Translations under genes and position numbers: made by a program
Shown here: positions 9,481 through 14,163 of the stretch, one piece after another
Position numbering within the stretch: the first letter of the stretch is position 1
How the letters are laid out: each line of letters begins with the position of its first letter
Notes under the pieces: model-generated
The model's input: the letters and a program-made list of their open reading frames with translations, nothing else
Told to the model about the DNA's origin: nothing
Database searches by the model: none
Assembly: GCA_904063045.1 (NCBI GenBank)
Contig: CAJFCJ010000005.1
Location: 3,652,165 to 3,716,164 of the forward strand
Reading direction: 5' to 3'
DNA: 64,000 bases
From: Dimorphilus gyrociliatus
Lineage: Eukaryota > Animalia > Annelida

Positions 9481-9994
9481 ATATTAGAAAAGTGAAATAT
9501 TATATTTATGAATTTTTCGTGATGAATTTTTGTCCTAATAAAGTAGGCCTTGTCATATTTATATATAATATAAACAGAGATGTCTGATAAAAAACAAACT
9601 TAATTCATCTATCCTTCCATCAAAAGAAAACAAAGTGACAATTGAATCTCAAGTGGGGCGGTTATAATTTATTACGTAATCATTGACACATTCGTTGTAC
9701 AGATTTAAGGATCTTTTTGGTATGATGAACGAGAATTTTTTTTTGATGACCTGCACAAATATAGAGGAAAATATAACAATCTTAATTTTCCTTTTTCCAA
9801 AAAACAGGGGGATACGCTAATACAACGTATATATTTCAGTTAAAATTGATACATTCCTAGTCAAGGCAAGCACGTAAAAGTATCCAACCAGTAATGGAAA
9901 ACGTTTTATTAGACAATCTAACCAGAATAAAGCATAGAAAAGTAAACGTAAGAAAAAGTAGAGTTGTATCAATTGGCATTAATCAAATTGATTA

Positions 9995-12900
9995 TCAGTC
10001 ATCGGTTTCTTCGAAATCCTGCAATAACAGTATTTAACTTGAGTACAACTAAAATAAAACCATAATATTATTTGTACCTGAGTTTTTGGTTCTAAGTCTT
10101 CACCGTATTGAATAGCCATATCAATTATTGCTAGAATGTCGTTTATATTATCTTCGTCAGTTCTATCGATTGGATGAAACTTGACTAGGCTATAATCTTC
10201 AACCTGTGTTTTTTATAAATAATTCTCATTAAAACAAAGAAAATTAAACCTATATACCCTTAGCCTATATACGGAAATGTAAATAAAACCGCAATAATGT
10301 ACAAGCGCGTAAACAAATACGGCTAACACGATTTTCTTAAGGGAAGATCCTTTGATGTATAATATTATATATATAAATACAAGATAAATATATATATATA
10401 TTATATATATTACAGAAAAGGATTACGATAATAATTTAAGTATAAATAGATAAAAATACAATTTAAAAAAAATAGGGTCTTTTGTGGTCCACCCGTCTGC
10501 TTTCTTTAAGATTTTCTGCATCTTCTTCTTCTTCGTCTATTACCGAACCAATCTTTAAGCTGCTTCTGTGAAATTCCTGTTTTAGACATCAACTCTTGCT
10601 TCTCGTCCTCTGTTGGATATGGAGTGACTTTATGCGCTTCGAACCATTCGTTCAGAATACTATTTATTTCGGGTGCGAAATTTTTTCTTGTCCTCTTCTT
10701 TTTCGTCTCTGGTTCATTAGTTGTTGCTGGTGAAGTCATACTTGATTGGGGATTCAATGATGGGGCAGGAGCCGGTGGCGGAGGCTGTAGCTGTAAAGGT
10801 GCGAATGACGATGATGAGGGATGATGAGTGGGCGGTAATGGTGCTGGTGGTGTAGAATAATTGATAGAATGGGGTGAAATCATGCTATGTCCTCCATATC
10901 CTATAAAATTATCGTGGATGGCACTCGCTGGTGAAGCTCCTGTCATATTACCGAGAGGCGATGGAGAATACGGCGTATACGAAGTTGTTGGAGATGGATA
11001 ACTGTTGTACAGATAGGCGTTGTTGTAATGTTGTTGAGCAACGGGACATGGTGAGGCAAGACCAGAGAAGGGGATTATTTGAGGCTGAGAAGATTTTAAA
11101 TGATTCTTCTGTTTCATTCTTTGGCGAAGCCAAGTTCTAATATGTGCTGGTGACGTATTCAACGAAGAAGCCAATCTTCTTTGGATTTTTATATCGTGAA
11201 TACCTTCCGATGTAGCTTCATTTAAGAACCAAGATTCCAGAGTACTAATCTCTTTCGATCCGAGTACATTCGACTTGGCCAACGGCTTAAAACGACGCGG
11301 TGACGAGTCGGGAGAGGGCCTTTTCGGACTTTCCCAAGGACGGAACACATTTGCTTTTTCTTCCTCGACAACCAGATGTTGAATATGTTGAACATGATGA
11401 AGAGGACTTCGACGTTCCGATGATGATGGTGATCCTGATGTTGAAGACGTACTCATACGTACAATCTCCTCATCTGATACTCCACTTCCAACGGCAGACA
11501 TGGTTTTATTAAGTAACTTGGACAACCTCACTGTATGAGCTCGACTCGACAACTATGGTGATTTGAACGCGCTCACGGCGTTTTATGAAATCCGGTCGTC
11601 TAGCCGTAGTCACGTGACTTAAAAAATTTAGAAAGTTTTGCAAACACAGGAATTCACTCAATACAACTTCGACGCTTCCACTGAGTTCCGACTTTCAAAC
11701 GTGTCAAATAGGCGGCCTATACTCATAGAATTGCGCTTTTATGAAGTAGTAAAAATATTGGATAGCTGGTTTCAAACTCCTCAAGAGTAACTTTTAAAAT
11801 CACATCAAACGCTATAACAAGCGTCAAACAGCGCTCACCAATTGACTCGTGGTCTTTACCCAAACTGACTAATAACAACAAATTTTCGGCAAATTTGTAT
11901 AAGATCAATACAAATAGATGTACATTTCTAATAACATTCAATTAAATACAATTTATACATTTTTTACATTAAAAAACAAACAAATACAATCTTTTAATAT
12001 TTCGGTTTCCTCCCATATTTTTACCCCTATAGTCCTTCTATTAAATATGCCTATTTTCGCTTTTCGTTTACGACGGTGTTATAATTAATGTGTTAAACAT
12101 AAATGTCATTCTATATACCAAACGACAAGAGAATACTTAAACTGAACGTTTCTAGAAAGTGATTTTTACATTGACAGAGTTTCACCGTTCAGACAATTTA
12201 ATTAAACATACATTTAAACCTAACCGTACGTTTAACGTCTCTTCCTAAATTAGACATATACAACAGTATCTATATTTAGATTTAATGGATTTTGTATAAG
12301 ATTTAAAAGAATGTTCTTTTTTATTATTTTTTCCTTCCATTATACAATGGCCGTTTGAAGTATATTCTTAAAATTATTAAGAACAAGTTGAGTAGTTGAT
12401 ATAAAGATAAAGAGTAGTTATTAAGAGATAGAGTGTATACATGTATTTATATATTATACTAATATATAAATACATACAGTATATATATATGGAAAGTCTA
12501 TGAAAGGAAAGGTAGAGTAGTATCAACAGTAATTTTATACAAAAGTGTTATACGCACGGCGTTCACTCTTTTTTTTTTTATTATCAAGAATATGTTTTAA
12601 ATATCGTTTCACACTAGTTGACGATCTTTTTCCCTTTTGACAGAATCAATGTGTTAGTTTTACGCTGATAGATAAGCGATTAAATGATCAAAAGACCTTT
12701 CATTTTTTATTTTAAACCGTTAGATAGGACTTGGACGTGACTTTCTAATTAGGTCATTGTCTTAAAGGAGTCAACCGTTTTAGAATTCCGTACCAAAAAA
12801 AAAGACAAAAAAAAGAAAACAAACGTTCCTTGAATGGTATAAATGTATAGATAAGGATAAAAATAACCTATAAATATCGCGTATTTTTCCTAGAAATCAA

Positions 12901-13722
12901 TAAGTAACTATATTTTTTCTACTTACGATATCGGCAATTCCGCAGGATAATTTTGAATATTTCTCGTTAAATTTATCGTTGGATTTCTCTTGAACAAGAG
13001 TTTTTAAATCAGAGTCTAAAAGTCTGTTATATAAAATATAACATATTAGTTATATACAGTTTAAAGACAACTATATACAGTATATATATATGTTTATATA
13101 TATGTTTATATATTCTATATTTACCTTTCCATTTCCCTTCTAGAATGTTTATCTAATAAATCAATTTTTGTTATTAAATTTACGTGTGTTGTTTCGAGAA
13201 TGACCATTGCCGATAAAGCAGCCATTACCCCAGACACATACTGGAAATTAAAGGATAGAAATACAAAATGACTTTACAATTCCCCCATCGTTTAGAAAAG
13301 AAGATAAAAAGATACTAGACAGTTTAATTGTGACAGTTAGGACAATGTTTCTTGCTGTGATTGGTACCACATAGTTCCTGTCTAGTACCTTATGGTTTTT
13401 ACTCTTACTTTTAGTGGTTCGACCATAAATTGAGAATCTATTAAGAATACGGAACACATTCGAAAATTCATATTGGCTAATTTGGTAACGAGCTCCTTCA
13501 TTACCGGAATATGACTGTACAATTCAATTTGACCTGGAAAATTATGTATTTTGATATTTAAACTAATAATTAATTACATTTAATTAAAATTTTGTAATTA
13601 TTACCTGGACAATCGAAGAGGTAGTAATCGTCTTCATGCTCTCCTAACTGCTCTTCTAACCAATCCAAATTCTTCGCGAAATATCTTAAAATGATAGTTT
13701 TCAAGCAGAATATTTAAAAATA

Positions 13723-13770
<48 letters not shown>

Positions 13771-14163
13771 TAACTCCATGCAGAATATTAATCCACCATT
13801 TGGACCATATTGCAATGATTCATCTTCCATAGCATCCTCTAGTTGTATAAGATCGCGAATATCTGTTACGCAATGTAATGTTACAACATGTTTCAAGTTT
13901 GTCATGTATAGTAAATTTACCAGCTGCAACTGGATAATCAAATTTTTCTGCAGCAGGGTCTAAGTTAATAACATGTATGGTTCGCTTTATAACTTCGCAA
14001 TGATGGACAATGGTAGTGCAATAAGAAGACTGCAAAATATGAAAGAATATTTCGTAATTAAATATCGCTCCCATGTGAAAGTTTAACATAGATCGTGTTT
14101 TATAAAACTGTTTACTTTGCCACTACCGGCTGGACCAATAACAAGTTGTCCGTATCTGGGCAT
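9995..14163 (-). CDS. GPN3: GPN-loop GTPase 3 (9 exons: 14163-14116, 14029-13921, 13862-13775, 13684-13605, about 13532-13409, 13240-13125, 13023-12927, 10203-10078, 10018-9995)
   Basis: [41 protein letters not shown], and C-terminal [11 protein letters not shown]...[11 protein letters not shown]. Intron 7 (12926-10204) is 2.7 kb. Confidence 0.95.
10506..11501 (-). CDS. Intronless TALE-class homeobox protein with an additional degenerate N-terminal homeodomain
   Basis: C-terminal [18 protein letters not shown]...[13 protein letters not shown] (PYP, three-residue TALE insertion, G50). A second HD-like block (TLESWF...[21 protein letters not shown]). First ATG at 11501; the track starts at a TTG at 11552. 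Confidence 0.9.
   Translation of the reverse strand: MSAVGSGVSDEEIVRMSTSSTSGSPSSSERRSPLHHVQHIQHLVVEEEKANVFRPWESPKRPSPDSSPRRFKPLAKSNVLGSKEISTLESWFLNEATSEGIHDIKIQRRLASSLNTSPAHIRTWLRQRMKQKNHLKSSQPQIIPFSGLASPCPVAQQHYNNAYLYNSYPSPTTSYTPYSPSPLGNMTGASPASAIHDNFIGYGGHSMISPHSINYSTPPAPLPPTHHPSSSSFAPLQLQPPPPAPAPSLNPQSSMTSPATTNEPETKKKRTRKNFAPEINSILNEWFEAHKVTPYPTEDEKQELMSKTGISQKQLKDWFGNRRRRRRCRKS
11608..11619. promoter_or_regulatory. Palindromic extended E-box AGTCACGTGACT upstream of the nested TALE gene
   Basis: Perfect 12-bp palindrome containing GTCACGTGAC (USF/MiT-TFE type), about 110 nt upstream of the first ATG. Function is inferred. Confidence 0.45.
13731..13767. repeat. (TA)n microsatellite, representative of dozens in the window
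   Basis: About 18 TA units in GPN3 intron 3; similar runs at 1298-1343, 6095-6116, 21800-21830, 35888-35912 and 47853-47876. Confidence 0.95.

Follow-up and report, generated by a model that had tools for sequence, protein, structure and literature searches.

A probable intronless, non-canonical TALE gene with a homeodomain and an altered homeodomain-like module in the annelid Dimorphilus gyrociliatus

Background

Spiralian-specific TALE genes represent the largest known taxon-restricted homeobox expansion and are tied to blastomere specification, while their origin and the change of their domain architecture are an open question. Dinophiliformia is an early-branching annelid clade, and a locus on contig 5 of Dimorphilus gyrociliatus raises this question in a compact, well-delimited case: what kind of TALE gene is it, and what is the conserved region in front of its homeodomain? 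We analysed a 64,000-nt stretch of this contig (3652165-3716164; hereafter the window, and all coordinates for contig 5 are window positions). On the minus strand, as seen from the open reading frame list and the sequence, a single exon of 331 codons with a TAA stop occupies 10506..11501 and is nested, on the same strand, within a 2.7-kb intron of a GPN-loop GTPase (GPN3-like) gene. We consider it probable that the frame represents a genuine TALE gene, non-canonical, intronless and transcribed on its own, which encodes a homeodomain expected to bind DNA and an N-terminal module (N block) that derives from a homeodomain and has been strongly altered. A preliminary description of the window, made from the letters alone, had pointed to a double-homeodomain TALE gene at this place. 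The motifs that it quoted are all present: LESWF and LNEWF, two 16-residue stretches ending in TWL and DWF, GIH in the place of PYP and WLRQ in the place of WFGN. Its residue numbers differ from ours because it counted from an upstream TTG (348 aa), whereas the frame opened by the ATG at 11501 encodes 331 aa.

Homeodomain and N-terminal module

The C-terminal end of the protein (aa 268-330; 10512..10700, minus strand) is a TALE-class homeodomain according to Pfam, phmmer, AlphaFold2 (AF2) and comparison with an orthologue. With its limits set by numbering from Trp48 (W318), it has 63 residues, PYP at aa 294-296 and the three extra residues that TALE homeodomains carry between helices 1 and 2, and its Arg-rich tail stops one residue short of the stop codon. 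Pfam assigned Homeobox_KN to aa 286-325 (57.2 bits, E 1.5e-15; cut-off 24) and Homeodomain to aa 269-327 (E 2.7e-10), and no further significant domain was found in the whole 331-aa protein. The DNA-contact residues are all present, namely W318 (Trp48), F319 (Phe49), N321 (Asn51), R323 (Arg53) and a basic N-terminal arm, and WFGN at aa 318-321 places Gly at position 50. Because all canonical contact positions are kept, with Gly at 50, this domain should bind DNA sequence-specifically. AF2 modelled it with a predicted local distance difference test score (pLDDT) of 75-93. In the phmmer search against the PDB, Exd/PBX1 came out on top (E 5e-15, about 47% identity, ungapped), followed by TGIF (3e-10) and MEIS (about 5e-8). 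Gly50 is also found in non-PBX TALE proteins of the hit set and is hence not exclusive to PBX.

The sole orthologue found is a 336-aa protein (P0002) from the Logan assemblies of SRR23372228 and SRR23372216, to which the 331-aa frame matches at 78% and with the same end; the homeodomain is 94% identical between the two. HMMER was run exhaustively over 1.84 billion representatives and gave 4245 homeodomain matches, among which only the cluster of this orthologue covered the N-terminal half. Other orthologues are lacking in that search, since any two-domain protein would have ranked at its top. A word-index protein search with the homeodomain as query yielded, from 5 candidates, nothing beyond the gene and its orthologue and was of no help in classification. 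Thus the gene appears restricted to this lineage, seen so far only in D. gyrociliatus and one close relative, as the preliminary description had anticipated for a non-canonical TALE gene. Bivalves, a fungus, an amoeboid protist and unnamed metagenome proteins supplied the best of the other matches with a single homeodomain, and these carry no orthology signal. Multi-homeodomain TALE proteins were rejected as orthologues, as their high scores stem solely from several homeodomain copies; the top non-orthologous matches (P0013-P0016, P0022, P0024) consist almost wholly of 3 to 10 tandem TALE homeodomains.

The N block (aa 73-136; 11094..11285, minus strand) is best described as a divergent, homeodomain-like three-helix domain, a description to which profile, AF2, structure scans and orthologue all contribute. 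In homeodomain register it keeps Leu16, the aromatic pair of helix 1, the helix-2 Leu, Ile45, Trp48 (W124) and Arg52. Changed are PYP (to GIH), Phe49 (to Leu), position 50 (to Arg), Asn51 (to Gln, Q127) and Arg53 (to Met, M129), so that WLRQ stands where WFGN would be; both Q127 and M129 are invariant in the orthologue. The loop between helices 1 and 2 is longer by one residue than in a TALE homeodomain and by four than in a 60-aa homeodomain.

For a profile comparison, a hidden Markov model (HMM) was built from 358 TALE homeodomains out of the exhaustive HMMER search. Aa about 79-135 of the protein aligned with its positions 19-75, which make up the complete domain, and differed in length by one additional residue in the loop; the score was 10.4-12.0 bits (E 1e-5 to 6e-6 as a single comparison). 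None of 2000 shuffled sequences reached 10.4 bits (maximum 8.1), the reversed N block scored -0.6, and hhalign of the N block against the TALE profile gave E 4e-5 and a probability of 70%. Among the window's 365 open frames, the N block was the top match other than a homeodomain and the sole one that spanned the whole profile. When the N block alone served as query sequence for 165 TALE proteins, nearly all of its best, weak matches fell in register on their homeodomains. The alignment of this block with the C-terminal homeodomain, as proposed in the preliminary description, therefore stands at the level of the TALE profile and not of the pair: BLASTP of one against the other gave no alignment, only 9/61 residues are identical in register, and the two run gap-free in their second half only, owing to the extra loop residue.

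AF2 predicted helices at 82-95, 104-113 and 118-137, whether the whole protein or the fragment alone was modelled (pLDDT 61-79). VIA-align, which is independent of Foldseek, was run over 48,161 representative chains and placed homeodomains in 26 of the top 28 rows, led by Exd (Z 6.2, root mean square deviation 2.7 over 56 of 58) and Meis2 (Z 6.0, 2.5 over 55 of 55). With moderate confidence, the predicted N block thus has the three helices, the helix-turn-helix geometry and the hydrophobic core of a homeodomain, and profile and predicted fold can cautiously be said to concur. The preliminary description had named structure prediction and an HMM scan as checks. The former gave three helices for the N block, with homeodomains as top structural matches, in keeping with its view of a block that lacks PYP and the WFxN core and is nonetheless homeodomain-like; the latter recovered Homeobox_KN and Homeodomain at the C-terminal block and left the N block blank in Pfam.

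Conservation of the N block indicates that it is maintained. It shares 89% of its residues with the orthologue, against 45% in the Ser/Pro/Tyr-rich linker (aa 169-262; 10716..10997, minus strand), which is variable, carries indels, has a ratio of non-synonymous to synonymous change (dN/dS) of about 0.37 and is predicted to be disordered (pLDDT 34-42 in AF2). The synonymous sites of the coding sequence are saturated at this distance (proportion of synonymous differences, pS, 0.7-0.8). As judged from these comparisons, the N block is a constrained, altered domain and no decaying pseudo-domain; the term pseudo-homeodomain of the preliminary description is misleading, as purifying selection acts on the block and on the true homeodomain with equal strength. 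Canonical DNA binding by the N block is unlikely because Asn51 and Arg53 are lost.

Relationship to other TALE genes

Two-homeodomain TALE genes of spiralians, some of them with a degraded domain, and N-terminal companion regions are already known (PMC6118893, PMC5322547, PMC8524836); the preliminary description had likewise stated that some spiralian TALE genes have two homeodomains. What is new here is an orphan example from Dinophiliformia, in which an unusually well-conserved altered module is combined with a Gly50 homeodomain. The spiralian TALE-IV/SPILE-B genes encode two homeodomains, one of which is degraded in some members (PMC6118893, PMC8524836). In the D. gyrociliatus genome we found about a dozen other non-canonical TALE homeoboxes, including two genuine double-homeodomain TALE genes (contig 6, 3182778-3183316, plus strand; contig 7, 1892314-1892775, minus strand), the latter with both homeodomains in one 330-aa open frame. 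The name TALE clade IV is reportedly that of Paps 2015 and Barton-Owen 2018, and SPILE-B that of Morino 2017 and 2021.

The mollusc hits were searched for another N-terminal companion region, PADRE, which comprises a conserved stretch of ~87 aa N-terminal to the TALE homeodomain in the molluscan TALE clades VI/VII and related SPILE clades (PMC5322547). Instead of the PADRE motif or an N-terminal conserved region, this search revealed a second homeodomain (HD1) upstream of the homeodomain in these proteins. The HD1 sequences of the two D. gyrociliatus double genes group together (support 94/88) and match the mollusc HD1, with which they share the signature KKW[MF]AN.RVRN.NTL; the contig-6 and contig-7 genes correspond to the published TALE-IV/SPILE-B genes. 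The N block is comparable with PADRE in position and size, the only two features compared; however, the hit set lacks the literal motif, and the weak matches of the N block are almost entirely homeodomains.

The gene could be a diverged paralogue of TALE-IV/SPILE-B, in which HD1 degenerated into the N block and the second homeodomain (HD2) persists as the intact one. This possibility is tentative, and it has several points in its favour. The order of a homeodomain-like domain followed by a homeodomain is the same, the same genome holds the two genuine double genes, mollusc proteins among the closest homeodomain matches also bear the upstream HD1, the best own-genome match of the target homeodomain is HD2 of the contig-6 gene (47%), and degraded homeodomains have been reported in TALE-IV members (PMC6118893). 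Furthermore, a clade of the target homeodomain with HD2 is not rejected by the approximately unbiased (AU) test (p 0.38 for the contig-6 HD2 and 0.25 for the mollusc HD2 group). On the other hand, the homeodomain joins no HD2 group in the free tree, the N block shows no particular likeness to HD1 (its hhalign match, with E 0.005 and a probability of 7.5%, is poorer than the one to the general TALE profile), the signature of the KKWMANKRVR..NTL type that follows HD1 is absent from the target, and the domains are about 130 aa apart, in contrast to about 30 aa in the own-genome double genes.

Taken side by side, both the target and the TALE-IV/SPILE-B genes are lineage-restricted, non-canonical TALE genes with two homeodomain-type modules per protein. 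The N block of the target resembles a homeodomain in profile and predicted fold, but without PYP and Asn51 and with the additional loop residue. In contrast to TALE-IV/SPILE-B, the target has a linker about four times longer, a first module without PYP, Asn51 and the NTL signature, a Gly50 homeodomain that joins no HD2 sequences in the free tree, and an altered module that is strongly conserved and not decaying. The most parsimonious origin would be that of a diverged TALE-IV-type gene, with an origin from PBX less likely. As another source of the N block, internal duplication was considered and found no support, since the protein's own homeodomain ranks only 200th of 359 in similarity to it. 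None of the homeodomain classes of the worm's own genome stands out as similar to the N block.

It is unlikely that the N block does not derive from a homeodomain at all, in which case it would be a short helical domain of other descent or a different helix-turn-helix, and its likeness to a homeodomain would be fortuitous or convergent. This explanation draws on the blank results of BLASTP and Pfam, on the mere 9-11 identities to any homeodomain, on the weak Pfam matches in the region to the YdaS helix-turn-helix and ThsB_TIR (E 0.03-0.3), on a structural Z of only about 6 and on the tendency that AF2 may have, on a shallow alignment, to default to a common fold. Several of our own results weigh in the same direction against a homeodomain-derived module in an independently transcribed gene. 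Pfam gave nothing significant for the N block, whether run on the whole protein, on aa 1-170 or on the block alone; the top 50 Foldseek matches, all of them homeodomains, had non-significant E-values (0.3-0.9); the AF2 confidence for the block is moderate and has a two-sequence alignment beneath it; a VIA-align Z below 8 may merely mirror a common helical arrangement; the ESM Atlas scores (0.83 at most) are a lead only; and, as to transcription, no polyadenylation site on the same strand was identified within the host intron. A chance likeness is nevertheless hard to reconcile with a profile match that covers the whole domain with its core in register (Leu16, the helix-1 aromatics, the helix-2 Leu, Ile45, Trp48 and Leu49), with the shuffle control, in which no sequence beat the profile score, and with the near-exclusive homeodomain content of the structure scan, whose best two rows are TALE proteins.

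Could the gene instead be related to PBX, as the Gly50 might suggest? The preliminary description had noted a WFGN homeodomain with no visible PBC domain, and translation and Pfam bear this out: PBC (PF03792) gave no match even at E up to 10, neither in the whole protein nor in aa 1-170. The canonical PBX of D. gyrociliatus lies on contig 14, where a PBC domain stands beside a separate, intron-split PBX homeobox. This PBX, together with the missing PBC signal in the target, rules out that the target is the worm's PBX. A maximum likelihood (ML) tree was computed for 48 homeodomains, with PBX represented by P0033; the worm's own PBX, MEIS and PKNOX, whose homeoboxes are intron-split with unjoined exons, were left out, as were SIX and other non-TALE matches and a shorter TGIF-like copy. 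The target homeodomain had no resolved place in the free tree and joined neither PBX nor the HD2 groups, and the AU tests rejected none of the three constrained clades, that with PBX included (p 0.24).

A PBX retrocopy that lost PBC, with its Gly50 and PBX-like residues inherited and not convergent, is a distinctly improbable origin. Such a copy would fit the best sequence matches among solved structures (Exd/PBX1), the features that the gene and PBX have in common (Gly50, the Asn-Phe pair of the N-terminal arm and the ILNE-aromatic-Phe motif of helix 1), the intronless state and nesting in a host intron, as retrocopies often have, and the AU result for the PBX clade. There is, however, no trace of PBC, the free tree has no grouping with PBX, Gly50 also occurs outside PBX, and fungal and protist homeodomains score as high as PBX or higher. 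Moreover, most other non-canonical TALE homeodomains of the genome sit in long open frames in six-frame translation, and the N block aligns to homeodomains and not to PBC. Compared directly, the target resembles PBX/Exd in having a TALE homeodomain with Gly50, about 47% identity and a similar N-terminal arm and helix 1; it differs in lacking a PBC-A/B domain, in an intronless homeobox, whereas that of the worm's own PBX is split after position 46, in Asp for Asn47 and Arg for Ile54 in the recognition helix, and in having no fourth helix.

Gene model and genomic context

The preliminary description had taken the gene for an unannotated or novel member of the spiralian TALE genes; unannotated it is not. 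GenBank holds it as DgyrCDS3959 (P0001, 399 aa), a model that is 98% identical over 98% of the frame. The model exits the frame at a GT (10543-10542) inside the Gly50 codon and joins a 96-nt piece (10350-10255), followed by two further exons (10206-10078 and 10021-9998) that were located by tblastn of the model tail and are the C-terminus of the GPN3-like protein. The second exon of the model (10255..10350, minus strand; located by tblastn of the model tail) is probably no real exon: in the relative's contig L016 its acceptor and first codons are deleted and further indels break the frame in that stretch. Because the orthologous protein ends just like the unspliced frame and the acceptor is deleted in L016, we read DgyrCDS3959 as a chimera with GPN3, in which the homeodomain is truncated at Gly50; 10506..11501 is the true form of the gene, and the GPN3 annotation is probably wrong or truncated as well. 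That the public model is right, with the GPN3 C-terminus attached to a homeodomain cut short, or that the frame is an alternative part of GPN3, is highly improbable in spite of the existence of the model in GenBank, its canonical GT-AG junctions and the shared strand of gene and host, since the orthologous contig lacks the acceptor and first codons of that exon and breaks its frame, the orthologous frame has the same Arg-rich tail that completes the homeodomain, the GT is imposed by the Gly-Asn codons, and the model tail is simply the conserved C-terminus of GPN3. Homeobox surveys relying on public annotation would misread both the TALE gene and GPN3.

The gene and its orthologue share the ATG and the first 33 residues without any change, while the 20 nt preceding the ATG differ by an indel. 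This acidic, Ser-rich N-terminus (aa 1-33; 11403..11501, minus strand) is highly conserved in nucleotides too: its pS is 0.35 at 100% amino acid identity, in comparison with 0.7-0.8 across the remaining coding sequence, and 11500-11451 is 96% identical to L016. The low synonymous change in the first 33 codons may point to a nucleotide-level or RNA-level constraint that extends from the 5' untranslated region (UTR) into the coding sequence. Behind the N block, an extension (aa 138-168; 10998..11090, minus strand) shows 90% amino acid identity to the orthologue and a low AF2 confidence except for a short helix at 156-162.

Immediately 5' of the ATG lies a highly conserved non-coding block of 360 nt (11521..11880, minus strand), the presumed promoter and 5'UTR of the TALE gene itself. 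In 50-nt windows it is 86-98% identical to L016, as compared with about 84% in the GPN3 exons, 80-88% in the homeodomain codons and 30-55% in the intron background. It contains a TATA-like CATAAAAG at 11743-11736 and a palindromic E-box CACGTG at 11616-11611, and it is single copy in the genome. The conservation of this block, together with its TATA-like box, argues for independent transcription of the TALE gene, which we infer on these grounds. An Rfam scan of 9800-13200 gave no match, and no covariation emerged from a consensus fold of the block as RNA, nor could any have emerged from two sequences so nearly identical. Just past the stop codon follows a T-rich block (10440..10505, minus strand) that contains TTTTTAT and is presumed to be the 3'UTR; 10500-10451 is 84% identical to L016, and a regulatory role of this block we can only infer. 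A second conserved block downstream of the stop codon, of about 55 nt and about 88% identity, lies at 10280-10335 (minus strand) within the supposed second exon of DgyrCDS3959.

The GPN3-like host gene spans 9998-14029 on the minus strand, with its earlier exons at 14029-12921. PF03029 matches its exons at 13127-14029, the exon before the 2.7-kb intron (12921..13046, minus strand) is conserved with L016 in tblastx at 13046-12921, and the exon downstream of the TALE gene (10078..10206, minus strand), found by tblastn of the P0001 tail, has 77% tblastx identity to L016 4789-4944. Since L016 is collinear with the window, running through the 5' exons of GPN3, the TALE frame and the 3' exon of GPN3 and beyond, the same-strand nesting in the GPN3 intron is conserved. 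According to the genome paper of D. gyrociliatus, the median intron measures 66 bp and neither operons nor trans-splicing are in evidence; the paper contains no treatment of TALE genes (PMC7854359).

Possible function

The product of the gene would be a transcription factor in which the C-terminal homeodomain supplies sequence-specific DNA binding. The N block would no longer read DNA canonically; it may offer a surface for binding partners or for regulation within the molecule, or make an atypical auxiliary contact with DNA or RNA, and would thereby take the role that the PBC or MEINOX domains have in canonical TALE proteins. It is rather doubtful that this goes as far as a dedicated partner-binding or autoregulatory module that replaces PBC/MEINOX in a PBX-like (Gly50) factor, with the 5' block, the first 99 nt of the coding sequence and the T-rich 3'UTR marking a maternal or early-cleavage mRNA under tight post-transcriptional control, in the manner described for SPILE genes. 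A comparable case may be HOP/HOPX, which likewise has the three-helix homeodomain fold and has lost key DNA-contact residues, yet is conserved; HOP appeared among the structural matches of the N block (VIA-align rank 20) and as an ESM Atlas lead. It differs in that the N block shares its chain with an intact homeodomain, and there is no sequence relationship between the two beyond the fold. The gene is thus a convenient subject for the question of what second homeodomains do.

Elsewhere in the same genome, contig 7 carries three Iroquois-type TALE homeoboxes in tandem within 17 kb (1067939-1084506, plus strand), their class being assigned by eye from the WFANARRRLKKENK motif.

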